The notes: generated by a model from the letters alone, not told the origin. Shown: positions 8,295 through 64,000, counted from the stretch's first letter. The stretch: 64,000 nt of DNA from Macrostomum lignano (GCA_002269645.1 NIVC01000328.1:101276-165275), one strand, 5' to 3'. Made by a program: numbers and translations.

Positions 8295-8935
8295 GGTCGA
8301 CTCTCCTGTGCCGATGAAAACTTCGAGCCGCGAAATTTGATGCCGTCTTTCGAGAGCTTTTTTGGCTGCAGTTATTGCGACTGAATGTTTGTGCAGAGAT
8401 GAGAAAAAATAGTCAGAGCTTATGAGAACGGTGCTCTGGTAAGGGCCTCTCACTGGGGAGAGGTGGTCGGTGCCCCCAGCCATCTTTGGAGTTGGTTAAA
8501 CTGTGCACTGCAGCATGAAAGAATGCAAAGCCACTGCGGAGCTGCTTTTCCTGCCTCCTGCCCGCCGCTGTGTCAGAGGTGAAAGGCCTGCTTACTGTGT
8601 GCCTTCCTGCCGAGCGGCTCTCCGCTGCGGAGGGCGCGGGGGGAGAGTGGAGAGCCGGCCAACGCGGCTCTGTGTGCTCAGCGTCTCTGCCCCGTTGCGC
8701 TCGTTTTGTGAGTTTTTTGGTGCCGACGCCCTAGCCTGGGGCTAGGTTTAGGCATGAGAACTCATTTCCGTTGGGGGTCTTTATGGTGATCTTTGCTACG
8801 GTGTACAACGAGCATTTCTGAGTGCAATTTCATAATAATATTTTCAGTAAATGACTGCAATATGCGCTTCTGTGTTGCATTTTTTGTAACGCATAAACAT
8901 TACACACTTGGGCAGCGAACTAGTTTAGGAAATTG

Positions 8936-10587
8936 GACTCAGGAGAGTAGACACTCACGGGACTCAGGAGGGTACACACGGGACTCAGGAGAGTACACAC
9001 GGGACTCAGGAGAGTACACACGGGACTCAGGAGAGTACACACGGGACTCAGGAGAGTACACACGGGACTCAGGAGAGTACACACGGGACTCAGGAGAGTA
9101 CACACGGGACTCAGGAGAGTAGACACTCACGGGACTCAGGAGAGTAGACACTCACGGGACTCAGGAGAGTAGACACTCACAGTCTCAGGAGAGTAGACAC
9201 TCACAGTCTCAGGAGAGTAGACACTCCCAGACCCCAGACTCAGGAGAGTAGACACTCACAGTCTCAGGAGAGTAGACACTCCAGACCAGACCCCAGACTC
9301 AGGAGAGTAGACACCCCAGACTCAGGAGAGTAGACACTCACAGTCTCAGGAGAGTAGACACTCCCAGACCCCAGACTCAGGAGAGTAGACACTCCCAGAC
9401 CCCAGACTCAGGAGAGTAGACACTCACAGTCTCAGGAGAGTAGACACTCACAGTCTCAGGAGAGTAGACACTCCCAGACCCCAGACTCAGGAGAGTAGAC
9501 ACTCCCAGACCCCAGACTCAGGAGAGTAGACACTCACAGTCTCAGGAGAGTAGACACTCCCAGACCCCAGACTCAGGAGAGTAGACACTCCCAGACCCCA
9601 GACTCAGGAGAGTAGACACTCACAGTCTCAGGAGAGTAGACACCCCAGACTCAGGAGAGTAGACACCCCAGACTCAGGAGAGTAGACACCCCAGACTCAG
9701 GAGAGTAGACACCCCAGTCTCAGGAGAGTAGACACCCCAGACTCAGGAGAGTAGACACCCCAGACTTAGGAGAGTAGACACTCCCAGACCCCAGACTCAG
9801 GAGAGTAGACACCCCAGACTCAGGAGAGTAGACACTCCCAGACCCCAGACTCAGGAGAGTAGACACTCCCAGACCCCAGACTCAGGAGAGTAGACACCCC
9901 AGACTCAGGAGAGTAGACACCCCAGTCTCAGGAGAGTAGACACCCCAGACTCAGGAGAGTAGACACCCCAGACTCAGGAGAGTAGACACCCCAGACTCAG
10001 GAGAGTAGACACCCCAGACTCAGGAGAGTAGACACTCCCAGACCCCAGACTCAGGAGAGTAGACACTCACAGTCTCAGGAGAGTAGACACCCCAGACTCA
10101 GGAGAGTAGACACCCCAGACTCAGGAGAGTAGACACCCCAGACTCAGGAGAGTAGACACCCCAGTCTCAGGAGAGTAGACACCCCAGACTCAGGAGAGTA
10201 GACACCCCAGACTTAGGAGAGTAGACACTCCCAGACCCCAGACTCAGGAGAGTAGACACCCCAGACTCAGGAGAGTAGACACTCCCAGACCCCAGACTCA
10301 GGAGAGTAGACACTCCCAGACCCCAGACTCAGGAGAGTAGACACCCCAGACTCAGGAGAGTAGACACCCCAGTCTCAGGAGAGTAGACACCCCAGACTCA
10401 GGAGAGTAGACACCCCAGACTCAGGAGAGTAGACACCCCAGACTCAGGAGAGTAGACACCCCAGACTCAGGAGAGTAGACACTCCCAGACCCCAGACTCA
10501 GGAGAGTAGACACTCACAGTCTCAGGAGAGTAGACACCCCAGACTCAGGAGAGTAGACACCCCAGACTCAGGAGAGTAGACACCCCA
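8936..10587. repeat. 21-30 bp minisatellite built on GACTCAGGAGAGTAGACAC with variable spacers
   Basis: Direct inspection; unit type changes along the array (21-mer, then 23-, 25- and 30-mers). Confidence 0.97.
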
Positions 10588-19119: not shown

Positions 19120-20570
19120 AAAACTCAAATACATGAAGAAACACCTGTCGAACTCAAATACATGAAGAAACACCTGTCGAAACTCAAATACATGAAGAAA
19201 CACCTGTCGAAACTCAAATACATGTAGAAACACCTGTCGAAAGTCAAATACATGTAAAAACACCTGTCGAAGGACTCGAAACTGAAATAAATGAAGAAAC
19301 ACCTGTCGAAACCCAAATACATGCAGAAACACCTGTTGAAACTCAAATACATGCAGAAACACCTGTTGAAACTCAAATACATGCAGAAACACCTGTCGAA
19401 ACTCAAATACATGCAGAAACACCTGTTGAAACTGAAATAAATGAAGAAACACCTGTCGAAACCCAAATACATGCAGAAACACCTGTTGAAACTCAAATAC
19501 ATGCAGAAACACCCGTTGAAACTCAAATACCTGCAGAAACACCTGTTGAAACTCAAATACATGAAGAAACACCTGTTGAAACTCAAATACATGCCGAAAC
19601 ACCTGTTGAAACTCAAATACATGCCGAAACACCTGTTGAAACTCAGATACATGCAGAAACACCTGTTGAAACTCAAATACATGAAGAAACACCTGTTGAA
19701 ACTCAAATACATGCAGAAACACCTGTTGAAACTCAAATACATGCAGAAACACCTGTTGAAACTCAAATACATGCAGAAACACCTGTTGAAACTCAAATAC
19801 ATGCAGAAACACCTGTTGAAACTCAAATACATGCAGAAACACCTGTTGAAACTCAAATACATGCCGAAACACCTGTTGAAACTCAAATACATGAAGAAAC
19901 ACCTGTTGAAACTCAAATACATGCAGAAACACCTGTTGAAACTCAAATACATGCCGAAACACCTGTTGAAACTCAAATACATGCAGAAACACCTGTTGAA
20001 ACTCAAATACATGAAGAAACACCTGTTGAAACTCAAATACATGCAGAAACACCTGTTGAAACTCAAATACATGCCGAAACACCTGTTGAAACTCAAATAC
20101 ATGAAGAAACACCTGTTGAAACTCAAATACATGCCGAAACACCTGTTGAAACTCAAATACATGCCGAAACACCTGTTGAAACTCAGATACATGCAGAAAC
20201 ACCTGTTGAAACTCAAATACATGCAGAAACACCTGTTGAAACTCAAATACATGAAGAAACACCTGTTGAAACTCAAATACATGCAGAAACACCTGTTGAA
20301 ATTCAAATACATGCCGAAACACCTGTTGAAACTCAGATACATGCAGAAACACCTGTTGAAACTCAAATACATGCAGAAACACCTGTTGAAACTCAAATAC
20401 ATGAAGAAACACCTGTTGAAACTCAAATACATGCCGAAACACCTGTTGAAACTCAGATACATGCAGAAACACCTGTTGAAACTCAAATACATGCCGAAAC
20501 ACCTGTTGAAACTCAAATACATGCAGAAACACCTGTTGAAACTCAAATACATGCCGAAACACTTGTCAAA
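19120..20570. repeat. 30-bp tandem repeat (GAAACTCAAATACATGCAGAAACACCTGTT)n, about 48 units
   Basis: Direct inspection; only 2-3 degenerate units at the paralogous site 32900-32980. Confidence 0.97.
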
Positions 20571-21374: not shown

Positions 21375-22440
21375 AAGCTCCAGAGATCACTGAAGCGCCA
21401 AAGACTCCGACTGTCCAACCGACTCAACGAGCTTCAGAGATCATTGAAGCGCCAAAGACTCCGACTGTCCAACCGACTTAACGAGCTTCAGAGATTACTG
21501 AAGCGCCAAAGACTCTGACTGTCCAACCGACTCAACAAGCTTCAGAGATCATTGAAGCGCCAAAGACTCTGACTGTCCAACCGACTCAACGAGCTTCAGA
21601 GATCATTGAAGCGCCAAAGACTCCGACTGTCCAACCGACTTAACGAGCTTCAGAGACTACTAAAGCGCCAAAGACTCCGACTGTCCAACCGACTCAACGA
21701 GCTTCAGAGATCATTGAAGCGCCAAAGACTCTGACTGTCCAACCGACTCAACGAGCTTCAGAGATCATTGAAGCGCCAAAGACTCCGACTGTCCAACCGA
21801 ATTAACGAGCTTCAGAGACTACTAAAGCGCCAAAGACTCCGACTGTCCAACCGACTCAACGAGCTTCAGAGATCATTGAAGCGCCAAAGACTCCGACTGT
21901 CCAACCGAATTAACGAGCTTCAGAGACTACTAAAGCGCCAAAGACTCCGACTGTCCAACCAACTCAACGAGCTTCAGAGATCACTGAAGCGCCAAAGACT
22001 CCGACTGTCCAACCAACTCAACGAGCTTCAGAGATCACTGAGGCGCCAAAGACTCCGACTGTCCGACCGACTTAACGAGCTTCAGAGACTACTAAAGCGC
22101 CAAAGACTCCGACTGTCCAACCGACTCAACGAGCTTCAGAGATCACTGAAGCGCCAAGACTCCGACTGTCCAACCGACTCAACGAGCTCCAGAGATCATT
22201 GAAGCGTCAAAGACTCCGACTGTCCAACCAACTCAACGAGCTTCAGAGATCACTGAAGCGCCAAATACTTCGACTGTCCAACCAACTCAACGAGCTCCAG
22301 AGATCATTGAAGCGCCAAATACTCCGACTGTCCAACCGACTCAACGAGCTTCAGAGATCACTGAAGCGCCAAAGACTCCGACTGTCCAACCAACTCAACG
22401 AGCTTCAGAGACTACTGAAGCGTCAATTGCTACGGTTGCC
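21375..22440 (+). repeat. 54-bp tandem repeat, about 19 units, reading as an 18-aa unit LKRQRLRLSNRLNELQRS; possible coding exon or pseudo-exon
   Basis: Direct inspection; same frame preserved in the diverged paralog 34870-35484. Copy A has three CGA>TGA stops and a -1 indel near 22157. Confidence 0.9.
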
Positions 22441-25409: not shown

Positions 25410-27380
<1,971 letters not shown>

Positions 27381-27387
27381 GCCCTCC

Positions 27388-28862
<1,475 letters not shown>

Positions 28863-28924
28863 CTCTCTATTTCTCTCTCGCTCTCTCTCTGCCTTCGTCT
28901 TGTCTTCCTCTCTTATTTGCTCAT

Positions 28925-34202: not shown

Positions 34203-34869
34203 CATCATTAGCTGTAGGGCGGTCCGAAGACACAGCGAGGAGGTGGGAATTGTGAGGAGGAGGAGGCGTGGGCCAAGTCAGAGAAGGCCGGTGGGCCTTC
34301 TTGGAGCGTGCTCTTTGCTGGGGAAAAAAGAGGCTCGTCTAGTTGCCTGTAAAGCCGAGAAATGTTCCCGGGTTTGTAGATCTCATCCAAGCATGGGTTT
34401 GGCCCGAGGTAGTGCAGCGGATCGTTGTTAAAGACATTGGCGGACGAAATGCTGGACGTCTCTTTGTCTAGACCTCAGAAGGGGCAAAGTTCGCTCCGGA
34501 GGTCTTTCGGAGGAAAAAGTGTCTCGCATGTCTCGACCGTGAGGGTCATGGTGATGGCCCGAATGTCTTTTCAACAGGACATCTCAGAGCCGCCTGGGGG
34601 GTGCTGATAATACGAGTTATCCTTTCAGTAGCGTTCTTGCAACATGGCTCTGCGGCGCAGAAGCTGATCTCGTTCTTAAGGACACTAAAGAGTCTTCAAG
34701 TGTGCTGGGCATGGATTGCAATCGCACGGCCGTTGATCAGGATGCGAACAATAACCCCAACCCGAACGAATTTTCTCTTTTTAAATTAAATTTTTATTGC
34801 CACAACCTGCCGGCAATCGAGTTACGCTATAAATACGTCGCATTCTAGATTCCAAACCTTGGGCTAGTA

Positions 34870-35484
34870 CTGTCCAACCCACTCAACGAGCTCCAGCGAC
34901 CACTGATGCGTCAGTTACTACGACTGTCGAACCTACTCAACGAGCTCTAGCGACGACCGATGCGTCAAATACTACGACTGTCCAACCTACTCAACGAGCT
35001 CCAGAGACCACGGAAGCGTCAAATACTACGACTGTCGGACCTACTCTACGAGCTCCAGAGACCACGGAAGCGTCAAATACTACGATTGTCCAACCTACTC
35101 AACGAGCTCCAGAGACCACGGAAGCGTCAAATACTACGATTGTCGAACATACTCTACGAGCTCCAGAGACCTCTGAAGCCTCAAATACTACGATTGTCGG
35201 ACCTGCTCTACGAGCTCCAGAGACCACGGAAGCGTCAAATACTACGATTGTCGGACCTACTCAACGAGCTCCAGAGACCACGGAAGCGTCAAATACTACG
35301 ATTGTCGAACCTACTCTACGAGCTCCAGAGACCTCTGATGCCTCAAATATTACGATTGTCGAACCTACTCTACGAGCTCCAGAGACCAGCAGTGAAGTGT
35401 CAAATACTACGACTGTCCAACATACTCAACGAGCTCAAGAGACCGCTGAAGCGTCAAATACTACGGCTGAGAGACCAGTTTTAA
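34870..35484 (+). repeat. 54-bp tandem repeat, copy B, about 11 units; open frame 34960-35484 encodes 18-aa units RKRQILRLSNLLNELQRP
   Basis: ORF track plus direct inspection; ends LRDQF like copy A (LPDQF). Confidence 0.9.
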
Positions 35485-39579: not shown

Positions 39580-41180
<1,601 letters not shown>

Positions 41181-41929
41181 GATGGGTGCAAGAGTGAACA
41201 GTGCCACTAGATGCCTAGGGGCTGATTAGGAAGTGTCTGGAGCACAATGCCGGGAGAGAGGCGCAGACCAGAAGCAGACAGTTCAGATGACTCGCAGACA
41301 ACAAGCTGAGGCCGAAGTCATGCTGAGACACAGGCGGAGTAGCAGTGGAGTGTCGGCCGGCTCGGCACTTGATTGAATTCCCTCAGCCTGAGAGGTCCCT
41401 CGCATCGTGTTTTGCCTTTGCCCGGAAAAAGGTCCTCTGCCCTCTTTTTAGCCTGGTATGTCCGGCAGGCCTCTCGCCAATTCCAATCCTCCTTCTGCTG
41501 ATCGATTTTCCCCCGAGCAAAGTTTTTGCCTGTCTTTCTTATTTTTTCCATGGCACTCGACTGTTTATATGAGCTGCATCTTTTCCTCTCCAATAATCCG
41601 ACCAACTTCCTGAGGAGCAAAACTCAATGTGGCTTCACCTTGTTTTGCTGTCTCGAAGTGCATGAAATCTATATGCCAATTTTATTTTTGAATAAGCCAA
41701 CAGTGAATTTTTCAAGCAGTCAATTAATAAACTGGAACTCGAGAAATTAGGTAATGCGAGTAATGAAAGAGCGACTTAGCAGATGTGATATGAGGGCAGT
41801 ATTTTGTTGCCAGACAGTGAGGGTATCAAACTTTTTGGTTAATTCAACAGTCTTAGTTGGAGTAATATTTTCTTTTTAATTTGAATGAATCGAAACATCA
41901 ACACATAGCTTGGAATCAAACTCCTCTTG

Positions 41930-43700
41930 GAGAAGTTGGGATCTTGAAGAAGCTGGGATCTTGGAGAAGCAGCTGGGATTTTGGAGAAGTTGGGATCTTG
42001 GAGAAGTTGGGATTTTGGAGAAGTTGGGATCTTGGAGAAGTTGGGATTTTGGAGAAGTTTGGATCTTGGAGAAGTTGGGATTTTGGAGAAGTTGGGATTT
42101 TGGAGAAGTTGGGATCTTGGAGAAGTTGGGATTTTGGAGAAGTTGGGATCTTGGAGAAGCAGCTGGGATCTTGGAGAAGTTGGGATTTTGGAGAAGTTGG
42201 GATCTTGGAGAAGTTGGGATTTGGAGAAGTTGGGATTTGGAGAAGCTGGGATCTTGGAGAAGTTGGGATCTTGGAGAAGTTGGGATTTGGAGAAGCTGGG
42301 ATCTTGGAGAAGTTGGGATTTTGGAGAAGTTGGGATTTTGGAGAAGTTGGGATTTTGGAGAAGTTGGGATTTTGGAGAAGTTGGGATCTTGGAGAAGTTG
42401 GGATTTGGAGAAGTTGGGATTTGGAGAAGCTGGGATCTTGGAGAAGTTGGGATCTTGGAGAAGTTGGGATTTGGAGAAGCTGGGATCTTGGAGAAGTTTG
42501 GATCTTGGAGAAGTTGGGATTTGGAGAAGTTGGGATTTTGGAGAAGTTGGGATCTTGGAGAAGTTGGGATTTTGGAGAAGTTGGGATCTTGGAGAAGTTG
42601 GGATCTTGGAGAAGTTGGGATCTTGGAGAAGTTGGGATCTTGGAGAAGCTGGGATCTTGAAGAAGCTGGGATCTTGGAGAAGCAGCTGGGATCTTGGAGA
42701 AGCAGCTGGGATCTTGGAGAAGTTGGGATTTTGGAGAAGTTGGGATCTTGGAGAAGTTGGGATTTGGAGAAGTTGGGATTTGGAGAAGCTGGGATCTTGG
42801 AGAAGTTGGGATCTTGGAGAAGTTGGGATTTGGAGAAGCTGGGATCTTGGAGAAGTTGGGATCTTGGAGAAGTTGGGATTTTGGAGAAGTTGGGATCTTG
42901 GAGAAGTTGGGATTTGGAGAAGTTGGGATTTTGGAGAAGTTGGGATTTTGGAGAAGTTGGGATTTTGGAGAAGTTGGGATCTTGGAGAAGTTGGGATTTG
43001 GAGAAGTTGGGATTTGGAGAAGCTGGGATCTTGGAGAAGTTGGGATCTTGGAGAAGTTGGGATTTGGAGAAGCTGGGATCTTGGAGAAGTTGGGATCTTG
43101 GAGAAGTTGGGATTTGGAGAAGTTGGGATTTTGGAGAAGTTGGGATCTTGGAGAAGTTGGGATTTTGGAGAAGTTGGGATCTTGGAGAAGTTGGGATCTT
43201 GGAGAAGCTGGGATCTTGGAGAAGTTGGGATCTTGGAGAAGCTGGGATCTTGAAGAAGCTGGGATCTTGGAGAAGCAGCTGGGATCTTGGAGAAGCAGCT
43301 GGGATCTTGGAGAAGTTGGGATTTTGGAGAAGCTGGGATCTCGGAGAAGTTGGGATTTTGGAGAAGTTGGGATCTTGGAGAAGTTGGGATCTTGGAGAAG
43401 CTGGGATCTTGAAGAAGCTGGGATCTTGGAGAAGCAGCTGGGATCTTGGAGAAGCAGCTGGGATCTTGGAGAAGTTGGGATTTTGGAGAAGCTGGGATCT
43501 CGGAGAAGTTGGGATTTTGGAGAAGTTGGGATCTTGGAGAAGTTGGGATCTTGGAGAAGTTGGGATTTGGAGAAGCTGGGATCTTGGAGAAGTTGGGATC
43601 TTGGAGAAGTTGGGATCTTGGAGAAGTTGGGATCTTGAAGAAGCTGGGATCTTGGAGAAGCAGCTGGGACCTTGGAGAAGTTGAGATCCTGAAGAAATTG
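41930..43700. repeat. 16-20 bp minisatellite (TTGGAGAAGTTGGGATC)n
   Basis: Direct inspection, about 100 units. Confidence 0.97.
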
Positions 43701-43827
43701 GGATCATGGTTTGAGTGAGTCAGTGGAGAGTCGAGCTGAGAAGATCGGAATGGACCAAAAGGAAGGTTTGGGATGACGGTAATAAGTTGTGAGTTCCTCA
43801 GTGATGCCCCGGCTTGCGGTGCGGTGC

Positions 43828-44865
43828 TCAGACTCTGCGGCTGGCGCAGCCCGGCACGAGAAGTTGCAGAAAAACGTTGCGAAATTTCTCGCTCTGTCGA
43901 ATGTAGACGGCAAAGTTGAACGAGCAGCTGGCAGCTTCCAGCGCCACCACCAGGCTCGCCAGCTCGCGCTGGCCGGCAGAGGGCGCGAACCACGGCAGGG
44001 CGTTCGGTCGAAGGACTCGAACCCGGGCCAGGGCGCTGAGCAGAATGGCTGGCACCAGCAGCAGCAGGTGGAAGGTGGACATGTACACCAGCATGCAGGT
44101 GGTCTTGCGCTGCCGCTGCAGGACATTCTGCCCGTTCGGCGGCAGGTGGCCGGGCCGGATCAGGGCGCGCTGGATGCCCAGAAAGCCGGACAGCAGCTGC
44201 TCGCGCTGACGGAACGACTCGCGCAGCAGTCGGACGATGCCCAGGTTCAGCAGCAGGATGGCCAGCAGCGGCAGGCCGCGGAGGCTGGCGTCGACTGCGG
44301 CGAAAGCTACGGCTGACGGAGTCAGATAGACGTGCACAGACGGCAACGCCGTTGACAGCGCCGAGTAGTTGGACTCTGCGATGACGAGCCCGGCAGCTGC
44401 TGGACGCTGGCCGCTGGCGAACTCGCTGCCGTAGAACAGGAACGGCGCCGCAGTCACCAGGCTGAGGGCGACGTGCACCGTCGACTTCCTCGAATTGCCG
44501 GCCTGCAGGTGTCGGGGCTTGCGGACGGCGCAGAACCGCTCGGCGCTGATCACCACGATGACCAGCAGGGAGGCTCTCGCTAGCGACGGCAGCAGGAACC
44601 GGCGCAGCCCGGCCGCTATGGCGACGCCGTTATTGTCGTCGTGCTCGCCGGCAAGAATCGATTCGGCGCACAGAGCCGAGTGGGCCAGGGCGGTGGCCAG
44701 GTAGAACAGGTCAATGATTGACAGGGCCAGCAGGCAGCGGTTGATGAGGTGGCCCCGCATGGACTTGTGCAGCGTCACGCGGATGGTGAGAGCGGCGCCC
44801 AGCATCCCGGCTAGGCAGCAGGTGGGCACGATGGCCAGCATGCAGAATGCTTCGAGGCGCTGCAT
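43828..44865 (-). CDS. Intronless class A GPCR, FMRFamide/peptide receptor-like, 345 aa
   Basis: Seven hydrophobic segments; LALSIIDLFYL (TM2), ISAERFCAV..P (DRY variant), RQRKTTCML (ICL3/TM6), SFNFAVY...SEKFR (TM7/H8). Confidence 0.88.
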   Translation of the reverse strand: MQRLEAFCMLAIVPTCCLAGMLGAALTIRVTLHKSMRGHLINRCLLALSIIDLFYLATALAHSALCAESILAGEHDDNNGVAIAAGLRRFLLPSLARASLLVIVVISAERFCAVRKPRHLQAGNSRKSTVHVALSLVTAAPFLFYGSEFASGQRPAAAGLVIAESNYSALSTALPSVHVYLTPSAVAFAAVDASLRGLPLLAILLLNLGIVRLLRESFRQREQLLSGFLGIQRALIRPGHLPPNGQNVLQRQRKTTCMLVYMSTFHLLLLVPAILLSALARVRVLRPNALPWFAPSAGQRELASLVVALEAASCSFNFAVYIRQSEKFRNVFLQLLVPGCASRRV

Positions 44866-50392: not shown

Positions 50393-50985
50393 TTACTCGA
50401 ACATGATTTCTACGCTGTTGGTGTCACCATGGACAGTCATGCGCATCTTCTTGGTAGTACCCTCAGACACGACATCTTGCTCATTGGTCCGCCCATTGGA
50501 CTCCACGGCTCCTCTGGCGTGTAGAGCGTAGGTCATACGCGAATGGTCCTTGACGTCTAGCCGTATGTACCTCTCTATTGCGTTGGACGAATGTCCAGTG
50601 ACGCGGGCTATATCGTCCCTAGCCAGTCCAGCCCGATGCAACCTGCTGGCACAAGTCTTCCTTAGAGACTGGTTTGAAAATTTACCATCCGTAGACACGG
50701 GTTTGGTGATATTCGCCACAATTGGAGTCGAGAGTAAGCCGGCCGATAGGTAGACACAGATAGACCGCAGGCGTCTCCATGAAGCAGTTTGGTTTGCCTC
50801 TCCTGAAACCAGTCGTCAAATTGCTTTAGTGCCCATCGTTCCTTCCGGCGTGTCGATTCCGGCACAGCAGCGTCAATCCTTTCAGCAACCTCGTTATCGG
50901 ACAGTAAAGCAAATCTAGAAGCCTCGTTTTCTCTCAGTTCAATGTCATTCAACCAGTCGAAAGCGAGTTCCAAGTCGTGTTTCAT
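50393..50985 (-). mobile_element. Internally deleted Crypton-like tyrosine recombinase element
   Basis: N-terminal RFALLSDNEV..IDAAVPESTRRKERWALKQFDDW (Crypton/DUF3504-type) lies almost directly against the C-terminal KFSNQSLRKTCASRLH..VTGHSSNAIERY. Confidence 0.78.
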
Positions 50986-52379: not shown

Positions 52380-53124
52380 TCAGATGGCTGTGATGGTGCC
52401 GTTTCGTCCACCGTAACTGGACCGGCTGGAACACCTGCCTCCGCCGCCGCCGCCTCCACCTCCGCCTCCTCCGCCTCCGCCGCTAGCCATCAGGCTGGAT
52501 GATGCATTGGTATCCAGGGAAGATGCAGCCATAATTGGTCGTAAATTTTGCTGCTGTTGCTGCTGCTGCTGCTGACGTCCGCGGTCGAGACTCACCTGAC
52601 TGCTGCTGCCGTAGCCAACGCCAATAACGGAATCCGTGCCTGCGCCGTCGCCATAGTCGGTACCGGCAAGAGGTCGCCGCTCGGTTTTGTAGTAGGTGTA
52701 CACAGGCCGAGGCGTTTCCGTTGACAGCTCGCTGGGACTGTGCTCGATAATGTCTCCGGTGCCGAAATCGAAGTGGGCAAAGCAGGGGACAACTGCAAAG
52801 CGTGGCATAGGCTATTGCGAATATGCGTGTTTTTGTGTGCATTTTGGTAGCCTTTTAAGACCTTGTACGCTCGTAGTTATAACTCTACATTAACTTTTCC
52901 GTTTAGAAAAATCTCATTGGAGAGACAGGAGTACCAGCGGTGCATCAGAAGCCTAAGGTGAACAAACACTCACCTTGCTTGTTGTCCATGAAAGATTCGC
53001 GAAGCGGCACGTTACCTATGATGACTGGCAGGCTCAGCTCAAGCACCTGCGTTTGCCCGAAAGCTCCCGAGGCCTCGATTTGAATCTGTAGGATGCAAAA
53101 CGGGATGGGGGAGTGTGTAATCAG

Positions 53125-53192
<68 letters not shown>

Positions 53193-55445
53193 CTAATCCA
53201 GTTCAATTGCGTAAGTAACTTTTTGTGGTAGCCATGTGACAGCCATGTCATGCACCGAAAAAACCCTATCTGAGCACCACTTTGGGTAATACTTTTCCCA
53301 ACTTCTAAAACGCGATGTAATAAAGTGCTCTCTGTTCTCGGGGGTACATCTTGCCTTCATCCGCTCCGTTGGCATTCGATTTTTTCAAGCAACGGCATGT
53401 TCTGTGGCATCGCGGATCGGATCAATAATAGCAATGATTTGTACTAAAGCAATGCTCAAGCATGCTATTCCCTAGCTAAGGAGTCTTAACTAAGAAACCA
53501 GAAGAAGAAAAACTCGGCAAGATTGAGTCGGGTGCAGAGGACCGAGAGAGGCTGCCGAAGTTAAAGCTGGCTTGGTGCGGAATCGAAATCGAAATTCGTT
53601 ACATTCGGCAGCATGGGATTAATTGAGTTCCGTCTCGTGTGCCAGACTCGCTCAGAAGCAGTTTTATTAGGCAGAACTGGTCTCGGCTTGATTTGGGGTT
53701 TTAGCGTTGACGCCTTTCTATTGATACTTGCATTTTATAGCTGTTTACTGTCCTAAGCTAGCTAATTTAGCTCGCGTGTCTGAATTGGTTTATCGCGAAT
53801 TCGATCAAAACCTGGTAAGTTCCCGCTCGTGACTATGTGCGGCTAGTCCCGTCAACGGCTAGCTTCTTCTGAGTTATACTGATGCAAGAAAAATGATTCA
53901 AATCTTGCTATAAGAAACTGTCTTGCGTCTTCAAATGCATAAAAACTTCAGTACTCACCTGCACCACATATTCCAGATCGATAATCTCGCAGTGCGGCAT
54001 TCCAGTTGGCGGCAGAGGTGGGATGTGGATCACGTCGTGGTAATAACCCGAAGCGCCGGGTTTGACGCGTTGGCCAGAGATGCTGAATATCAGCGCCGAG
54101 GCCACTTTCCTATGACTGCCTGCCGACAGGAACACGCGCTGCTGGAAGGTGATGTGGGTGCTGCGGACGCAGGCGGAGGAACTGTTGAACAGGTGCACGC
54201 TAATGTCCATTGTCTCGCCAGGCACGTAGCCAGTTTTTGCCAGCGATAATTCGCAGATTATCCGTCCTTTGCTCACGCAGCAATAGGCTAGGGAGATCTC
54301 CTTTTTCAAGCAGACCCGATCCTGGATGATAATTTTGATTCGAAATGTCGCGTCATTGGTTATGACGACAGTTTTTAACGCTCTAGAGATTTCGACGGCG
54401 TTTTCTACTAAGCATCTGCTCTATTCCTTCATCATGCTCATACTCGTACTCATTACTGATTATGGCGAATCACTTACAATAAGATGACGGTGAGCGTTCA
54501 AGTCATAGTAATTCACAACTAGTATCGTTCGCTCCCGACTATGACTGGCCGAGCGCTTCGCGTTTTCAACTTCCGCCTTGACGTTGAATGTAATGCGCGC
54601 CTTGATTCGGCCTGTCTCTGAGTAATATTCGAATGATGAAGGCAGCCTTTCTGGCAGTTGAAACTTGAATGGAAACTGGTGGAAACCGGGACTGATTGTG
54701 TAGCAGGATCCGTCGCTATTTTCGTCAAAGTCTGGAAGAAATAAAGCAAAATTTATGCTTCAATAAACAAAATACAACATATACTTCGACGGCATCTAGT
54801 TCAGCTCCACTGTGTGCTGTAGTTCTAGTTTGGCGTATTTGTCTGCCTATATTGGATGTTTTTCTGTCCCGATTTCCTGAAGCTTCCCTTGCTCCGAAAT
54901 TGCTACTAGCAATACTCAAGCCGGAGCTCTCAATCGAAGAAAACAGACCACACAGTTATTGAGACCGAGCCCTCAGCCTAATCGATTAACGTGTCACTTA
55001 AAAACACTCAAGAAACGGAACCAGGCGGGATCAAGTCCTTGCACAGTGGGGGTAAAAGTACCATTGGGGAGACATGGACGCGCTTTGTCTAAAATAATCT
55101 AAATGAGCACGGAGTCCAGTAAGCCACTCAAATGAGGCAAACTGTGCTCCTGCTCTTATAGTTAGCACATTGCCGGACTTTTTATGGTAGATTTTTCCAG
55201 TAAGAAGTAAGCTAAGGCACTTGGGCAGGATTTTCTATCCGTCTAAAATTAGAACCAATTTAAAACTTTATGAGAAGAAAATCAAGAAATTTCCACATCA
55301 AAGCTGCACATTAACTGACCCTTGCCGAATAGTTTGCAGCACGTCTGAAAGAAGACCTGATGCCCGGATATGGTTTCGGGACCGTCGGAGCGTGTCATCT
55401 CGATCCACGATGTCTCCGCACTTCCGTAGAACCACATGCGGCCGC
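52380..55445 (-). CDS. Alpha-arrestin (arrestin domain-containing) protein; exons 55445-55320, 54731-54478, 54321-53959, 53085-52974, 52792-52380 (or to 52596); first exon unresolved
   Basis: Arrestin_N (G.AETSW.E; GFHQFPFKFQLPERLPSSFE), Arrestin_C (KTGYVPGET..; LPPT..IIDLEY; LSLPVIIGNVPL) and tail RPVYTYY; all junctions GT-AG and in phase. Confidence 0.88.
53125..53187. repeat. (GT)n microsatellite in an arrestin-gene intron
   Basis: Direct inspection. Confidence 0.98.
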
Positions 55446-56284
55446 CTGCAATGCAGAAATTAGATGGCAGACCGTAAACTGAGCAGGAAATGATGCCCAC
55501 AAGGGATTTTTAGCGTGTCGCTTGGCGTGTCGACACCAACTACGAACTAACAACTAGGCCTGATATCGTAGGCGGCTGCCCAGGCCATCTCTCCAAGGCA
55601 ATGGGTCCCATTGGGGCCAACCGTGCCAAACTTTGATGAGAGTAAACTATCAGCAATGACTTTTAGCAGCTAATTACGTCCTGCACTTTCCCAGATCTGC
55701 TAGAGATGACGAGGACTGTGAGGGTCTGGCCTGAACTTCTCATCAAAATTATCTGCAACGGTGTTGTGAATCTTCATAACTTTCAGATATTTTTCTATTC
55801 GCTAAGTAGATTTTCTTCCTGGGTGGTCGAGAGTTTGAAGTTATAATTTGCTGTACAATGGCTTTTGCTTCAATAAATCAAAATCCAAGTTGGACCTCAT
55901 ACTTCCAATAATATTTACTTTTAATATGATTTTACATACAAGTTACAAGCTTACAAGTTTACTTTAGCCGCTTCGGTTTGAAATGCGGCATGCTACATTC
56001 AAAGCCTTAATAAGTAAACAATGGTCTTGATAGAATTCACTATTTATTAATAAAATTGATTTTCGAATTTTAAAAGACAGGGTAATTGACTTCCACACCA
56101 GTGTACGCACAAAGTACAGTCTCGCGTACAGCGCATGTGCAGCGTGTACACTGAATTTTGCAGCAAGGGCAAGAAAAATTCGGGTGCTCAGAGTGAAACG
56201 TAAATACGCATGACAGCAAGTTCCACTTAGAGTTTTCGATCTAATCTTTACGCTCGTACGTCTGGTAGAAAAGCTTTCACGACC

Positions 56285-59200
56285 ATGATTACACGTGCGA
56301 GTCTGGAGCAGCATATCCCCGATCAAAACCTTATATCGGCTGAAGGCGAACAACTACTTCGAGTAGCTGAAAAAAATGATTACAAGGAATTAAGAGACTC
56401 ATCGACGCAGGCGCCTCAGTAAACCATGCTGATAAAGACGGCCAGACGGCAGTTTGGTTCGCGTCTAGGAACGTCTGTTTAGACTGTCTCAGAGTTCTCA
56501 TCGAGAAGAAGGCTAACCTCGACGCTCAGTTGCGAAACGGCAATGTGACGGGACTGTGGATTGCAGCGGCCAACGGGCACATTGAAGTCATTCAGACTCT
56601 GCTCGACGGGGGAGCCGATCCCGAGATTCCCGATTCTCGGGGCGTGACGGCCCTGTGGACGGCCACTTCTTACGGATTCTACGAAATTGTGAAACTGCTG
56701 ATTGACTCTCGCTGCAATTACAACGCGACCAGAAGCAACGGAGAATCCTGCCTGTGGGTGGCGTGCCATCAAACTTTCGGCAAATTGTTGAACTCCTAAT
56801 CGGGCATGGTGCAGACTCGGAGCTGGCCAGAGATGACGGTCACACACCTCTCATGGCGGCTGCCGAAGGCGGCTTTGTTGATATTGTGAAGATCCTCATC
56901 GACTATCAAGCCAATATTGAAGCTCGCTGTACTGATGGACAAACAGCTCTATCGCTGGCTGCATGCAACGGACACGATTCGGTAGTGAAGCTGTTGCTGA
57001 GCTCGGGTGCCAATCCGGATATCGATGAATCCGACAGTTCAACCGTGTGCCCTCTGGCGCAGAGCTGCGCCTACGACCGCCGTTCCACCGCTCGCCTGCT
57101 TTGGGACCAAGTGTCTGAGCAGCAGAGGCGTCATGCCATTGAGATTTGCAAAAGCCTTGGTAACGAAGAGCTGAAAGCGCTTCTTCAAGTTCTTGAAGAT
57201 CTTCAAGATCTTCATGGTCAAGAATCGTCGGCATATTGTCTAGATATGGGGTAAATGCCCGGAATATTTTCTTTCGATTTTAAATTCTTAAGTAGATTAT
57301 TTAAAACGACGAGAACATTTTGCCCCACACATGATGGACATATATGAAAAATCGGAGCTAAATTCCTTAAATATTTTAGTGAATTATCGGCAGAGATGAA
57401 GCGGTCAGGATTTACAAAGGAAAGGTCGCTAGTCATCGCCGCCGCAGCTGATGTTGTGCAAGTCATTTTCAGGTGTTATTTTCATATCGACAACTTCTAT
57501 GTTCTTGGAAGCTTCTGCGATGGCTTGGGCTGCAATCTCAGCACAGCGGACGGTTCCATAGGCCTTGACTCCGATATTGATTTCGCAGAGATCATGCGTG
57601 GCCAAAAGTTTCACCTGAAGAACTTTTGCAAGTGCAAAGACGTGTCTGAAGAGGAAAAGGTTGTCTACAAAGCTGGGCACGTTATGCTTGCCGGAAAACT
57701 TACTGTTGGTTAGTTTTTCTTCCAGTGTCGAACTTAAAAGAATATTATCCAAAAAATTACCAATACATTTCTCGCAATAAACCAATAAATTTAGGTTCGC
57801 GTCCAGCCATGACAACTCAGGCGTCTCCTGTAACGCCCAGCATGGACGTTGTTTACGCCTATTCCGCCTGCTGCTATCCAGCACTGAGCATTGTAACCGA
57901 TAGTGAAGAGGACTGCAAGCACTTTCCAAAGCAAATCACGGCACTGCTGAAAAAAGAAGTCGCACTGGTGACGCACCTGGTTCAGCTAATACGCGCTGGA
58001 ACGCCAGACGAAGAGGGCACTCAGCTGAGATTGAGCACTTCAATCCTGGAGAGCATAGTTCTACGCTCACTGAGCACCGAGCAGGGTCAGTTTTACATTC
58101 TACTGAAGTTCATCATCAAGAGAGTGCTTGGTACTAGAAGAGAAGAGTACCAATGCGTTGGCCTCAAATCGTATCACGCGAAATCGCTGCTGCTCTTCAT
58201 GCTGAAGGAAACTGACAGCGACGCGTGGTCAGTCGATAATCTTCGCCAGCTGCTGATCTCAGCGCTCGCTATGCTAAAGTCTTTTATGAACAACTACCCA
58301 GACGATGAGAAGTACTGCATGCCGCATTTCTTTCTGAAGGATGCGGTGTTGTATTTGAAGAGAGACCATCTCCCAAAATCTAGGATCATACAGCTCATTA
58401 GTCACGTGATTGAAAATATCGATCGATACTTGGTCGAATTTAAAAATCAACTGAAGCCACTTGAACGCAACGATCATCTTTCGCTGCATGTTTTTACGCT
58501 TTTTCCATTCGGCTTTTCTCTGTTTGACGATTCGACAGAGTCGGAGAATGTGTTTCACAATGCCTACATTCGCATCAAGAAGTACCTGAAGCTTACACTT
58601 GGAATAGCCAAGGACAGCGCGCTGCCGGAGGACATTGGCTCGGGTATTGACTGTCTTCCAGAGTTCGCTCGCACTGCCAAGCTCTGTCTAAAAGTGTTGA
58701 TGCTCATTCGTCAAGGTGAAAACGAAGATGCCAGACGCCTACTACTCAAGCACAGCGAGTTTACTGCCTGTCGATACCTGTCTGTCAGTGCAGACAAAGA
58801 AAGCAGCTTCGAGAGTATCAAGCTGAACATCTTGGAGCAGTTGAAAAGCTGCGATTCAATGTGGCGAATGTGCTGCCGGATCGATTTTGAAGACAACGAG
58901 AGCTTCTCTCCCGTTGTCTGCCGGGCGTGCTTCCCCAGCCGGATACCAAACCACGACAGGCGGCTGTACCTGAATTTTGAAGTGCTGCTGCAGCTCCTCA
59001 GACTGCGACTTCTAAATCCCTCTGATACAGACCGCGGCCTCGCTTGGTCGCAACTTGTCATTGATGACAGCTGCAGAGGCGCTGATTTCGAGGAGTTGTT
59101 TGCAGCCGCTCAGCTCGCCACTGATCGGGACAAAAAGCGAGTGGCCTTGCAGGCGATGCGCAGACTTTTCAATTTGCGTCACGAGAAGACGGACGTCCTC

Positions 59201-59293
59201 ATCAATCAAATTCTTGGTCGGAAAGTTGACTGTTCGGCTGTCCGTCACGACTCTGACGCAAAAGCCTGCTTCAATAGACTTGCTGATGTTTAA
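56285..59293 (+). CDS. Ankyrin-repeat + Mab-21/cGAS-like nucleotidyltransferase (cGLR), copy 1; exons 56285-57250, 57380-57708, 57795-59293; two -1 frameshifts in the ankyrin exon (about 56397, about 56769)
   Basis: 7-8 ANK repeats; NTase GSFCDG...DSDID and MDVVYAYSAC; Mab-21 core HLV..AG..QLRLSTS..E..L..L..EQ...Y.LLK, LKSYHAK..L, W...NL, MPHFFL; introns GT-AG in phases 2 and 1. Confidence 0.85.
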
Positions 59294-59476
59294 CCTAACA
59301 TGTATCTACTGTAGATCGGTAGGAATTTTTTTCATATAGGAATTATTTTATTCCGCATGCCAAACCATTCTAACCCCATAGTAAATTTCGCATGGCGCAC
59401 TTTGAATTGGCATTGTTTCAGTTTAAAATGTACGAGGTAAATTGTTGCCTTTTGGTTTTTATCTTGCCCTACAGTC

Positions 59477-59964
<488 letters not shown>

Positions 59965-60416
59965 GGTGAGCGCGCATTTCAGCAGCCAGACACAGACAGA
60001 GAATGGTTGGCCGGTGAGTGTGAGTCATCCATAGTAGATTGGTAGAGAGGAACTTATGTTCCTTTTTGAATTTGTCAGGCTAAGTGTACTCGTGCATGAG
60101 TACGAGCGTATGCGGGCATGAAGTACCTTATTTTAGGCTTTCTCCATAACAGTGCGCCCGTACAAGGCAGCGCTGTACATTTTGCACGGTACACTGTACA
60201 GTTTCATTGTTCTGTTTATATAGCTGCGATGCTCATTCATTTATAGTAAGCTACTCTATATTCAGCTATTATATCATAAACACAAGCATATAGCTCGTAG
60301 CCGCTTATAACCACTTGTTTCAACCAATTCATACCTGGTGCCAATTAAAAGGTACTAAACACAAGAACTGAAGAAGCCACTCCTCTGCAGCAGCAATGCC
60401 ACTCAGATCTGCCTGA

Positions 60417-63410
60417 ATGGCATCGGCAGACTCTGGCGAAGAGCTGCTGAAATGTGCGAAAGAAAACCTGTCGAGACGGCTACGCGACTTGATCGACACT
60501 GGAGTAGATCCCAACTACGAAAATAAAAACGGCGAGACTGCAGTTTGGTTCGCGTCTAGGAACGTCTGTTTAGACTGTCTCAGAGTTCTCATCGAGAAGA
60601 AGGCTAACCTCGACGCTCAGTTGCGAAACGGCAATGTGACGGGACTGTGGATTGCAGCGGCCAACGGGCACATTGAAGTCATTCAGACTCTGCTCGACGG
60701 GGGAGCCGATCCCGAGATTCCCGATTCTCGGGGCGTGACGGCCCTGTGGACGGCCACTTCTTACGGATTCTACGAAATTGTGAAACTGCTGATTGACTCT
60801 CGCTGCAATTACAACGCGACCAGAAGCAACGGAGAATCCTGCCTGTGGGTGGCGTGCCAGTCAAACTTTCGGCAAATTGTTGAACTCCTAATCGGGCTTG
60901 GTGCAGACTCGGAGCTGGCCAGAGATGACGGTCACACACCTCTCATGGCGGCTGCCGAAGGCGGCTTTGTTGATATTGTGAAGATCCTCATCGACTATCA
61001 AGCCAATATTGAGGCTCGCTGTACTGATGGACAAACAGCTCTATCGCTGGCTGCATGCAACGGACACGATTCGGTAGTGAAGCTGTTGCTGAGCTCGGGT
61101 GACAATCCGGATATCGATGAATCCGACAGTTCAACAGTGTGCCCTCTGGCGCAGAGCTGCGCCTACGACCGCCGTTCCACCGCTCGCCTGCTTTGGGACC
61201 GAGTGTCTGAGCAGCAGAGGCGTCATGCCATTGAGATTTGCAAAAGCCTTGGTAACGAAGAGCTGGCCGATTTGCTTCATCCAGAAGCGTCTTTGCGTTC
61301 TGAACAAAAACCCGCCTGTAGCTCTTTGTAAGCTTCTTACTATTGATTGTAGCTTGATGCTCATGTGAATGCGTTTACTCGTATTTTTAAGTTAAGCGGA
61401 AATGTCTACATATTTTTGTTTTTCAGGCAGCCTGTCGATATGAACGAGCTGAGCAAAAGGATGTCTGAAGCAGGCTTCACCAGGGAACGATCGCGAGTGC
61501 AAACCGCTGCGCCGACGTAGTGCAGGGCGTCTATAGGTCTTTCTTCCAAAAGAAGCAAGGAAATAACCTGGAGAAGGATTCTAGAACCATTTTCATCCTG
61601 GGCAGCTTCGGCGACGGCTGGGGCTGCAATCTGAGCTCAGTGGATGGCTCGGTCAGCAGAGAGTCGGACATAGACTTCACCGAGATAATGCTGGGACAGA
61701 GCTATCACATCCAAGGTGCTTGCCAGTGCGCTATTGACGAGGGCATGAAATACATCTACAAGAATGGGCACATTAGAATTAAACGCTCTGTTGGTAAGTT
61801 TGGCATGGCTGTTGCTATTTGAATCTTTGAAATATAATTGGCATCTACAGACTCCCGTGCCTCTTGTTAATAATTGTAGTGTCGCAGCCAGCGATGACAA
61901 CCCAGGCATCGCATGTGACACCCAGCATGGATATTGTTTACTCATATGCAGCGTGTGGCTATCCGGAAATCAGCATGCTTGCTTCGGTAGAAGACAAGGA
62001 ACACTTTCCAGATGAAGTGCTTCAGAAGCTCTGTAACGCAGTAAAGTCACCAAAGTATCCTTGCCATCTGATCCGCGCGGAACGCCGAACAAGGAAGGAA
62101 CTCAATTGAGAGTGAGCACATCAATTCTGGAGAGGATTGTTCTCCGCTCACTGACCACTGAGCAGGGTCAGTTCTATATTATTCTCAAGTACATTGTCAA
62201 GAAAGTGCTCGGTATTCGCACTGCAGAACACGAAAGTTTCGGTTTAAAGTCTTACCACGCCAAGTCCATACAGCTGTTTATGTTGAAGAAGACGCCGAAA
62301 GAAGCTTGGAAGACGGAGAATTTTCGAACCCTATTGATTACAGCTCTACACATGCTGCGAAACTATATGACAGAAAAGTCCAACATTGAAGAGTACTGCA
62401 TGCCGCATTTCTTCCTAAAAGATACCATTTTGTTTTTTAAAAAGGATCATTACCCAAAATGCAAGATTGTGGAGCACATTAACCATGTGATTGGAAATAT
62501 TGACAGATACATAACTGAATTCCGAGATCAACTGAAGCCGCTGGAAGATCCTGGATATTTATCAGTGCACCCGTTTGCGTTGTTCCCGTTCGGCTTCTCG
62601 TTAATTTGCGACCAGGAATCGACTGATGCCTACCATAATGCTTACATTCGAATCAAGCGGATCTTGATGGAGCTAATTAAGTTAGACAGGCCTCTTTCCC
62701 AGAATTTTATGCTCGAACTAGACAAGATTCCAAGCTTTGCTAATACGGCCAAGATTTGCCTTAGAGTCTTAGCCTTAATGAGACTGGGCGATGAGGAAGC
62801 AGCACGGAAGGTTTTGTTGGACAATCAAAGCAGCCGCGTTCTGCGAAACTTGACTATCAAGGAAGGACTGAGTAAAACTAAAACCAGAGAGGCGATCTGG
62901 AGTCAGCTGACTGGCCACGACACTCTGTGGCGAATCTGCTGTCGCATGGGCCACGGAACAGTGGACTGCATCCGGTTCGCTCCAGATCGAGATCAGTCGA
63001 TCAACCTGGTCTGCCGGGCGTGCTTCCCCAGCGTGTTGCCGTTTCACGAGAGGAGAGTCTACTTGAACTTTGTTGTTTTGCTGTATCTTCTGCGAATGAG
63101 TTTCTCTGATAGCCCTGATCAAGCTGGATCTGCTACCAAAGCCTTTCTGGATGATGTCCGCGGCGATTGGCGGAGTGCCGACTTTGAAGAGCTTCACGCG
63201 GTAGCGTTGATTACAGATAGTACAACTGAGGCCAGGCAGATGCTCAAGGAGATGCTCAAGCGCTACGATAAGCGCCATGTGAAGACCGATGAAGTTATCA
63301 GGCACATCTTGACGAAATGCTCTGTTAGGGTGGATCAGCTTGGACAACCGAGACTGCACCATGACAGTAGCGCGGCCGTTTGCTTATTGAACCGGAAAAT
63401 TATGATATAA
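60417..63410 (+). CDS. Ankyrin-repeat + Mab-21/cGAS-like nucleotidyltransferase (cGLR), copy 2; exons 60417-61327, 61427-61793, 61880-63410; two -1 frameshifts in the NTase region (about 61511, about 62078)
   Basis: Intact ANK exon; GSFGDG...ESDID and MDIVYSYAAC; same Mab-21 motifs and same intron phases (2, 1; second intron 86 nt in both copies). Confidence 0.85.
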
Positions 63411-64000
63411 CAAATCCGTCCTTCAGCTCCTGCTTTAAGTATTCATTCAGATGCTGTACATTATACATTAGCGTTTTGCTTTTACTGGTATCTGCAAATT
63501 ATTCTCATCATGCGAGGCTATTTTCGTTTGCAAAATTTAAACTAAATCTTAAAGTTTTCTAGAAGATGGGGACTGAAAAGTGGAAACGGGTGTCTCAGAC
63601 AAAGAATGTTTATCATTTTGTTTAAATGTCTCGGTTCCCACAACGACAAATGGCCTCGCATGCAAATTATTTTGCTCAAAGCAGATTTGAAAGCAATCGA
63701 TTTTGTTTATTATACAGGTGCGAGTATGTCAGATTTTTGAAGCAAGATAAATGTACCAGGTATATTTCGAGAGTATATGCTCAGCAACATTAAAAATTCG
63801 CCACTCTATGCACCAGTGAGCGCTTTCTCATAAACTATTCTGAAATATCTTTAATAGCTTTAATCCGCCCAACCTCGCACACCGCTCCCCACTTCATTCC
63901 TCAACTCAAGTCTGCCTGAGACTGCCTGATGATTGAGACTTTACTTGCTCTCTTAAAAGTGGCGACCACAGACGGAATGTTCTGTGATGGCGACTTTTCG

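Follow-up and report, generated by a model that had tools for sequence, protein, structure and literature searches.

cGAS-like receptors (cGLRs) were surveyed by Li et al. (2023; PMC9980059), who defined them by a motif, by homology across both lobes of the enzyme and by the similarity of AlphaFold models. The motif is made up of three parts, h[QT]GS, [DE]h[DE]h and h[DE]h; the first two are separated by 8-20 residues and the last two by 50-90. Most cGLRs (87%) stand alone and some carry TPR or ankyrin modules; ANK-cGLR fusions are described in that work, in line with what a sequence-only reading of the present DNA (the original prediction) had stated for some invertebrates. The DNA considered here is a 64,000-nucleotide stretch from the flatworm Macrostomum lignano (GCA_002269645.1 NIVC01000328.1:101276-165275), called the window, and positions are counted from its first letter. 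Between 56285 and 63410 it holds two neighboring genes, copy 1 and copy 2, each of which joins an ankyrin module to a cGAS-like nucleotidyltransferase (NTase). With a probability of about 0.8, on the strength of sequence comparisons and structural models, we regard them as functional tandem paralogues of the cGLR family whose frameshifts are errors of assembly.

Five of the 140 enzymes cloned in the 2023 survey came from M. lignano (nos. 89-93 in Table S3; PMC9980059). No. 90 is PAA45980.1 (BOX15_Mlig022265g3) and, in the portion of sequence that the table displays, was cloned from RERSRVQTAAADVVQG... onward. PAA45980.1 falls in the same 90% cluster as P0001, the annotated M. lignano protein to which copy 2 corresponds. 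The stretch displayed in Table S3 resembles copy 2 with one H to R difference, and it begins with RERSRVQ, past the ankyrins, whereas copy 2 includes them. As far as the displayed sequence goes, no. 90 is evidently the same gene as copy 2, minus the ankyrins. The locus had been treated as though it were a new find, but the gene of copy 2 was already in the published catalogue. The main text of the survey makes no mention of Macrostomum, and M. lignano is absent from its Table S5 (Li et al., 2023; PMC9980059). We take the M. lignano constructs to lie outside the 15 enzymes studied in depth, because their numbers, 89-93, fall beyond the first 15 rows of Table S3.

The same logic of an NTase core with ankyrins is seen in ankyrin-cGLRs of the coral Stylophora pistillata and in the "ANK" architecture class (Li et al., 2023, Figures 1C and 4C), in which the ankyrin part was interpreted as a ligand- or protein-interaction module (PMC9980059). 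The likeness is one of architecture. The coral belongs to a different phylum, and the fusion, which is the exception among cGLRs, is the rule in M. lignano (40 of 43 family representatives). The flatworm proteins also have an additional helical domain at the C terminus, of about 280 amino acids and without a match in the PDB. Human and mouse cGAS and the Crassostrea virginica cGLR1 (PDB 4K97, 8GJW, 8GJY) have in common with both copies the bilobed Mab-21 fold and a site made of GS and [DE]h[DE]...[DE]. Identity to these enzymes is 12-16%, with no sequence match over the NTase core and a detectable similarity in the helix bundle; the flatworm proteins differ in having a Leu before GS, a 20-residue spacer between GS and Asp, and the extra ankyrin and C-terminal domains. 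MAB21L1 and MAB21L2 (PDB 5EOG) belong to the same superfamily and have the same fold as both copies. They are stand-alone, highly conserved proteins of about 360 amino acids, in contrast to the lineage-expanded copies of 931-936 amino acids, which are paralogues about 48% identical. We know of no demonstrated product for MAB21L proteins. Bivalve Mab-21 proteins of about 700 amino acids, such as XP_052245803.1 of Dreissena polymorpha, are matched at E values of about 1e-9 to 1e-5, mainly in the helix-bundle part, and are also longer than the bare cGLR core.

Two Spliced Genes With Ankyrin and cGAS-Like Domains

The two genes lie head to tail on the plus strand with three exons apiece, as follows.

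Copy 1 exon 1: 56285..57250, plus strand; N-terminal cap, about 7 ankyrin repeats and linker; 1-nt deletions after 56389 and 56767; Ank_2 E=4e-50
Copy 1 exon 2: 57380..57708, plus strand; start of the NTase core; GS motif at 57507-57512, DIDF at 57573-57584
Copy 1 exon 3: 57795..59293, plus strand; third catalytic Asp in MDV at 57842-57850, Mab-21 helix bundle, C-terminal helical domain at about 58481-59290, stop; Mab-21_C 27.6 bits
Copy 2 exon 1: 60417..61327, plus strand; ankyrin module at about 60528-61226 and linker; intact in the window; corresponds to P0001 residues 1-303; Ank_2 E=1.7e-48
Copy 2 exon 2: 61427..61793, plus strand; NTase core; GS at 61601-61606, DIDF at 61667-61678; 1-nt deletion after 61509
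Copy 2 exon 3: 61880..63410, plus strand; MDI at 61927-61935, Mab-21_C at about 62181-62450, C-terminal helical domain at about 62565-63407, stop; 1-nt deletion after 62078

All four introns (57251-57379, 57709-57794, 61328-61426 and 61794-61879; 129, 86, 99 and 86 nt) have GT-AG borders. When copy 2 was spliced with an X at each of its two frameshifts, a protein of 936 amino acids resulted which is identical, residue for residue, to P0001 (PAA61004.1/PAA78648.1, 936 amino acids), a protein recorded as "hypothetical protein BOX15_Mlig022265g5/g1" and named in UniRef "Mab-21-like HhH/H2TH-like domain-containing protein." Copy 2 is called as an intact gene of this length on two further GenBank contigs of GCA_002269645.1, NIVC01000673.1 (L002) and a second one (L001), both of which encode P0001. 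Since the spliced protein agrees with an independent published gene model, the junctions of copy 2 are confirmed. Copy 1, spliced in the same way, gives a colinear protein of 931 amino acids; both of its frameshift sites are in exon 1, and the frame of exon 3 is uninterrupted in the window. The junctions drawn in the original prediction thus hold, and with them its claim that splicing joins ankyrins to a Mab-21/cGAS-type NTase, for which the annotation match, Pfam, AlphaFold with Foldseek and the survey of Li et al. (2023) all speak.

In each protein a linker joins about 7 ankyrin repeats to a bilobed Mab-21/cGAS NTase, and the helical C-terminal domain comes last. Both carry the tandem 33-residue repeats by which ankyrin-repeat proteins are recognized; Pfam finds six Ank stretches plus caps, or about 7 repeats, where 7-8 had been proposed. 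Mab-21_C (PF20266) scores 27.1 bits in copy 2, just above its gathering cut-off of 24.1, as is the 27.6 bits of copy 1.

An AlphaFold2 model of residues 305-936 of copy 2, built from an alignment with 61 relatives, reached a predicted local distance difference test (pLDDT) score of 89.4 and a predicted template modeling (pTM) score of 0.91. In a Foldseek search of the PDB, the top 50 matches were all cGAS, oyster Cv-cGLR1 or human MB21D2, with a probability of 1.0 and a target TM of 0.5-0.6. Against the cGAS and cGLR structures 350-425 columns could be aligned, which amounts to the whole catalytic domain. A profile of full-length homologues was dominated by ankyrin proteins, and an NTase-only alignment was used for the profile search of PDB sequences. 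It matched only cGLR1 (8gjy, E=1.6e-5), cGAS (about 1e-4) and, weakly, MAB21L1 (0.47), each time in the helix bundle.

The active site reads ILGS-x20-DIDF-x54-MDI in copy 2 (GS363-364, D385-I-D387-F, M-D444-I) and VLGS-x20-DIDF-x57-MDV in copy 1 (GS366-367, D388-I-D390-F, M-D450-V). In an alignment of 13 family members, S60 and D81 were invariant, and G59, D83 and D140 were conserved in at least 90%. The GS, the Asp pair and the third Asp read from the DNA are therefore intact in both copies, with the motifs as first given. Apart from the Leu before GS, the copies have the active-site motifs with their spacers, homology over the whole catalytic domain on structural evidence, and AlphaFold similarity, the properties by which cGLRs have been defined.

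Two other identities were considered and rejected. Pfam gave no OAS match, OAS1_C included, and none of the top 50 structures in the Foldseek search was an OAS. A MAB21L identity is at odds with multidomain proteins of 931-936 amino acids, with the paralogue identity of about 48% and with the profile scores (0.47 for MAB21L1 vs. 1.6e-5 for cGLR1); size, divergence and these scores bear out the earlier preference for a cGLR-type over a MAB21L-type protein.

The C-terminal domain of about 280 amino acids, which lies downstream of the cGAS-like domain, is mostly helical and conserved across the family. It was modeled with confidence by AlphaFold, both within the 305-936 model and on its own. Searches for relatives of this domain gave nothing credible among PDB sequences by hidden Markov model (best E 0.58), only generic TPR/14-3-3/PPR-like helical noise in the PDB by Foldseek with the separate model (best E 0.76), and no Pfam family.

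A Large Family in Macrostomum lignano

When the enzyme half of copy 1 was used to search a collection of 5.8 billion protein clusters, a single cluster was returned, from M. lignano and with P0001 as its representative. An exhaustive HMMER search then yielded 197 relatives, 60 of them at E<1e-30; the 60 representatives are 50%-identity clusters. All ten of the representatives sampled for their source were from M. lignano. Ankyrin repeats were found in 40 and Mab-21_C in 35 of the 43 representatives scanned. The proteins range from 600 to more than 1500 amino acids, and their N-terminal ankyrin arrays vary greatly in length. The Dreissena polymorpha protein is the only named relative identified from outside M. 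lignano, the other distant matches being unlabelled.

These counts amount to a large family of at least 60 clusters at 50% identity, seemingly specific to the M. lignano lineage, and agree with the diversifying family that had been postulated. Since 40 of 43 representatives carry ankyrins, the ankyrin-cGLR fusion is the standard build of the expansion.

Two members from outside the window, P0058 and P0173 (PAA59752.1 and PAA80948.1), are of note in that one family cluster bears the name "Caspase family p20 domain-containing protein," and Pfam Peptidase_C14 matches a single protein among the 43 scanned. In P0058 the cGLR-like part comprises residues 2-445, and this could be a sensor-effector fusion. 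Two separate regions of P0008 align to the query, so this protein may contain a pair of cGLR domains.

Catalysis and the Integrity of the Two Copies

Several observations weigh against a functional pair, some touching the enzyme and others copy 1. With respect to the enzyme, the Pfam scan gave no match in either copy to PF03281, the model of the NTase core, so that of the Pfam matches expected from the original prediction the ankyrin and PF20266 matches were obtained and this one was not. At the level of sequence, the resemblance to cGLRs of solved structure does not extend beyond the helix bundle. The Leu that precedes GS in both copies stands where the published motif has Q or T (V, F, L or C is found there in family members), and the spacer from GS to Asp is at the upper limit of the published range. 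In their available text, Li et al. (2023; PMC9980059) describe neither an activity of the M. lignano constructs nor a ligand or product of no. 90. STING is reported to be absent or lost in Schistosoma mansoni and Schmidtea mediterranea.

The Leu, the silence of the 140-enzyme screen on these constructs, and the absence of STING and cGAS reported from other flatworms would fit a reading of the copies as cGLR-like scaffolds, pseudoenzymes or adaptors that, comparably to MAB21L, no longer give a nucleotide signal and act by protein binding through the ankyrins. Such a role is unlikely, because both copies and at least 90% of the aligned members retain the GS and all three acidic residues, and in the absence of catalysis this would be difficult to account for. 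The ligands of the screen were nucleic acids, and the displayed part of construct no. 90 starts past the ankyrins; a negative result obtained with such ligands and without the ankyrin module is uninformative. Read to the letter, the motif lacks its Q or T here; that position is evidently not decisive, however, since the curated set of Li et al. (2023) contains the gene together with four of its paralogues.

The remaining points concern the possibility that one or both copies are pseudogenes, decaying remnants of an expanded family with real frameshifts. In the window each copy has two frameshifts. The genes called on L001 and L002 include no model at the position of copy 1, and its protein was not found in the collection of 5.8 billion clusters. 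In L001, exon 3 of copy 1 is broken by a 2054-bp insertion (L001:6672-8725) at window position 58901-58909, approximately. The insertion is flanked by a 9-bp target-site duplication (TTCTCTGCC), has an (AGTA)n tail and contains a reading frame of 662 amino acids that, by eye, looks like the C-terminal portion of a reverse transcriptase with an RNase H behind it; we interpret the insertion as a 5'-truncated long interspersed element (LINE). The ratio of nonsynonymous to synonymous substitution (dN/dS) in copy 1 between the window and L001 comes to about 0.5 for the whole copy and rises to about 0.9 when the ankyrin exon is taken by itself.

Comparison of the three contigs tells against real frameshifts. 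Window positions 54556-64000 are 99.9% identical to L002, and the window is 98.3-99.8% identical to L001. The four frameshifts of the window (56389/90, 56767/68, 61509/10 and 62078/79) are single-base deletions relative to L002, in which exon 1 of copy 1 is an intact frame of 968 nt. A different 1-nt deletion affects L002, where it falls in copy 1 exon 2 at window position 57424, and L001 has one in copy 1 in an A-run at 56370. No frameshift is common to any two of the three contigs, and at each site the frame is kept by two of the three sequences. Only 2 substitutions, set against about 10 indel events, separate the window from L002 over 9.4 kb, a pattern typical of errors in a long-read consensus. 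Because the frameshifts are private to a contig and of a single base, and because substitutions are so few beside indels, those of the window are most probably errors of long-read consensus or assembly rather than inherited lesions. Apart from stops that these indels create, neither copy has an in-frame stop. Placement of the first copy 1 frameshift in the A7 run at 56370-76 was also considered and was ruled out by L002, which reads ...AEKNDYKEFKRLIDAG... and puts the site at 56389.

Copy 2, moreover, is annotated intact at 936 amino acids on two contigs, and the NTase parts of the two paralogues give a dN/dS of 0.12. Decay is accordingly rejected for copy 2 and kept at a low probability for copy 1; that one or both copies are pseudogenes is, overall, quite improbable. 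The frameshifts had been named in the original prediction as a possible sign of two pseudogenes, a concern that is mostly dispelled for copy 2 but persists in part for copy 1. In the haplotype of the window copy 1 is probably intact, and it shows a presence/disruption polymorphism between haplotypes; it may be dispensable or decaying.

The divergence between the window and L001 is uneven, with 65 substitutions in 5.8 kb at 53156-58909 (98.3% identity) and 3 in 4.3 kb at 59722-64000 (99.8%). Homeologous copies may have recombined or been converted, or there may have been a sweep.

Gene Conversion and the Role of the Ankyrins

Most of the ankyrin exon is nearly the same in the two genes.

Gene-conversion tract in copy 1: 56432..57173, plus strand; partner 60523-61265; 98.8% identity over 743 nt
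Gene-conversion tract in copy 2: 60523..61265, plus strand; partner 56432-57173

In the other exons the paralogues are 68-73% identical in nucleotides, and outside the ankyrins their proteins are about 48% identical. The ankyrin cores differ by 3 amino acids, with a synonymous divergence (dS) of 0.017 and a dN/dS of 0.31. In the NTase dS is saturated (about 2.9), with the low dN/dS given above; in the C-terminal domain dS is saturated and not computable, and neither is dN/dS. The pattern indicates that the ankyrin exon is homogenized between neighbors by gene conversion. Conversion is recurrent, because copy 1 of L001 carries the copy 2 base at 56806, 56921 and 57044; it does not at 57010 or 57109. 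The enzyme halves are old duplicates under long-term purifying selection. In this pair the comparison argues against the ankyrins as the diversifying part. An ankyrin module that is kept the same while the enzyme and C-terminal parts diverge bears on where specificity lies.

The odds that the ankyrins are the sensor module are about even. The NTase could instead be active while the ankyrins serve localization, oligomerization or autoinhibition, with specificity residing in the NTase surface or the C-terminal domain. The near identity of the converted ankyrin core beside the diverged NTase and C-terminal parts is consistent with this arrangement, as are the conservation of the C-terminal domain across the family and its confident prediction. 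In cGAS and the known cGLRs, nucleic acid is bound on the surface of the NTase itself. Against this arrangement, the great variation of the ankyrin arrays in the family, among proteins of 600 to more than 1500 amino acids, fits variable recognition modules. A role for the ankyrins other than ligand sensing is thus conceivable, though somewhat doubtful.

Other Features of the Window

The spacer between the two genes contains a microsatellite.

(GTAA)n microsatellite: 59478..59964, no strand assigned; intergenic spacer; 122 copies; length differs between assemblies

It gives rise to a spurious minus-strand open reading frame (ORF) of 189 amino acids ("TYLL"). In the alignment to L002 it shows shifts by the 4-nt unit in both directions, and the AGTA tail of the L001 insertion is a similar repeat.

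The first 4973 nt of the window are a 28-bp satellite (179 copies, 94% identity) that runs off the left end and contains spurious ORFs of up to 1700 amino acids. From 7336 to 43709 the window consists mostly of tandem arrays, which account for its strong GC and AT skews.

7336-7924: 20-bp units
8935-10587: 23/46-bp units
19121-20566: 30-bp unit, 48 copies
21376-22426 and 34869-35469: 54-bp units
25412-26164: (TCTC)n
27422-28870: (TCTA)n, 362 copies
40134-41182: 20/50-bp GA-rich units
41925-43709: 17-bp unit, 104 copies

On the minus strand, an ORF of 345 amino acids at 43828-44865 resembles a G-protein-coupled receptor of the rhodopsin family (Pfam 7tm_1, 27.8 bits, below the cut-off of 30.5). 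Two overlapping minus-strand ORFs lie at 50393-50985; one of them weakly matches the C-terminal end of a tyrosine recombinase (Phage_integrase, E=6.5e-4, below the cut-off), and the two may be the remnant of a Crypton- or DIRS-like element. At 53908-54309, within about 52380-54800 and also on the minus strand, there is an exon with an arrestin C-terminal domain (Arrestin_C, E=9e-18). From the mapping of coordinates, it appears to be part of a minus-strand gene of 403 amino acids called in L001 (163-2554), the upstream neighbor of copy 1.

A Possible Signaling Pathway and Its Significance

If the two proteins work as cGAS, other cGLRs and CD-NTases do, the Asp triad of the activated NTase would bind two metal ions and, after an activating event, the enzyme would join two nucleoside triphosphates into a cyclic di- or oligonucleotide messenger. 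The messenger would be read by a receptor, and a downstream immune effector would be switched on. Activation might be controlled by the ankyrin solenoid, the C-terminal domain or both, through autoinhibition or by binding of a partner protein or a ligand; the NTase surface is a third candidate site.

The loss of both cGAS and STING is commonly ascribed to flatworms (Wu et al., 2014; planarian work of 2026). A literature search for Macrostomum with STING or cGAS found nothing relevant, and a word-seeded search with the ligand-binding domain of human STING gave only deuterostome proteins among the best 120 of 357 candidates. With its large expansion of ankyrin-fused cGLRs, M. lignano is an exception among flatworms. 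The family might form a nucleotide-signaling immune system peculiar to flatworms that operates without canonical STING and is activated by protein ligands or pathogen effectors on the ankyrin or C-terminal modules, rather than by nucleic acid. This is improbable; if true, these would be the first protein-sensing cGLRs, with a new downstream receptor. M. lignano is a tractable laboratory animal in which RNA interference and transgenesis work.

Copy 2 was already known; what is new is the copy 1 paralogue, the size of the family, the conversion of the ankyrin exon and the haplotype in which copy 1 is disrupted by the putative LINE. The value of the locus is modest and practical, since five such genes were cloned for the 2023 survey and their existence is no news to the field. 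It contributes a paralogue that had no annotation and a pair in which the ankyrin exon stays the same while the enzyme and C-terminal parts diverge, and it draws attention to a conserved C-terminal domain that lacks a known fold relative. The presence/disruption polymorphism at copy 1 resembles the kind seen in fast-evolving immune gene families.

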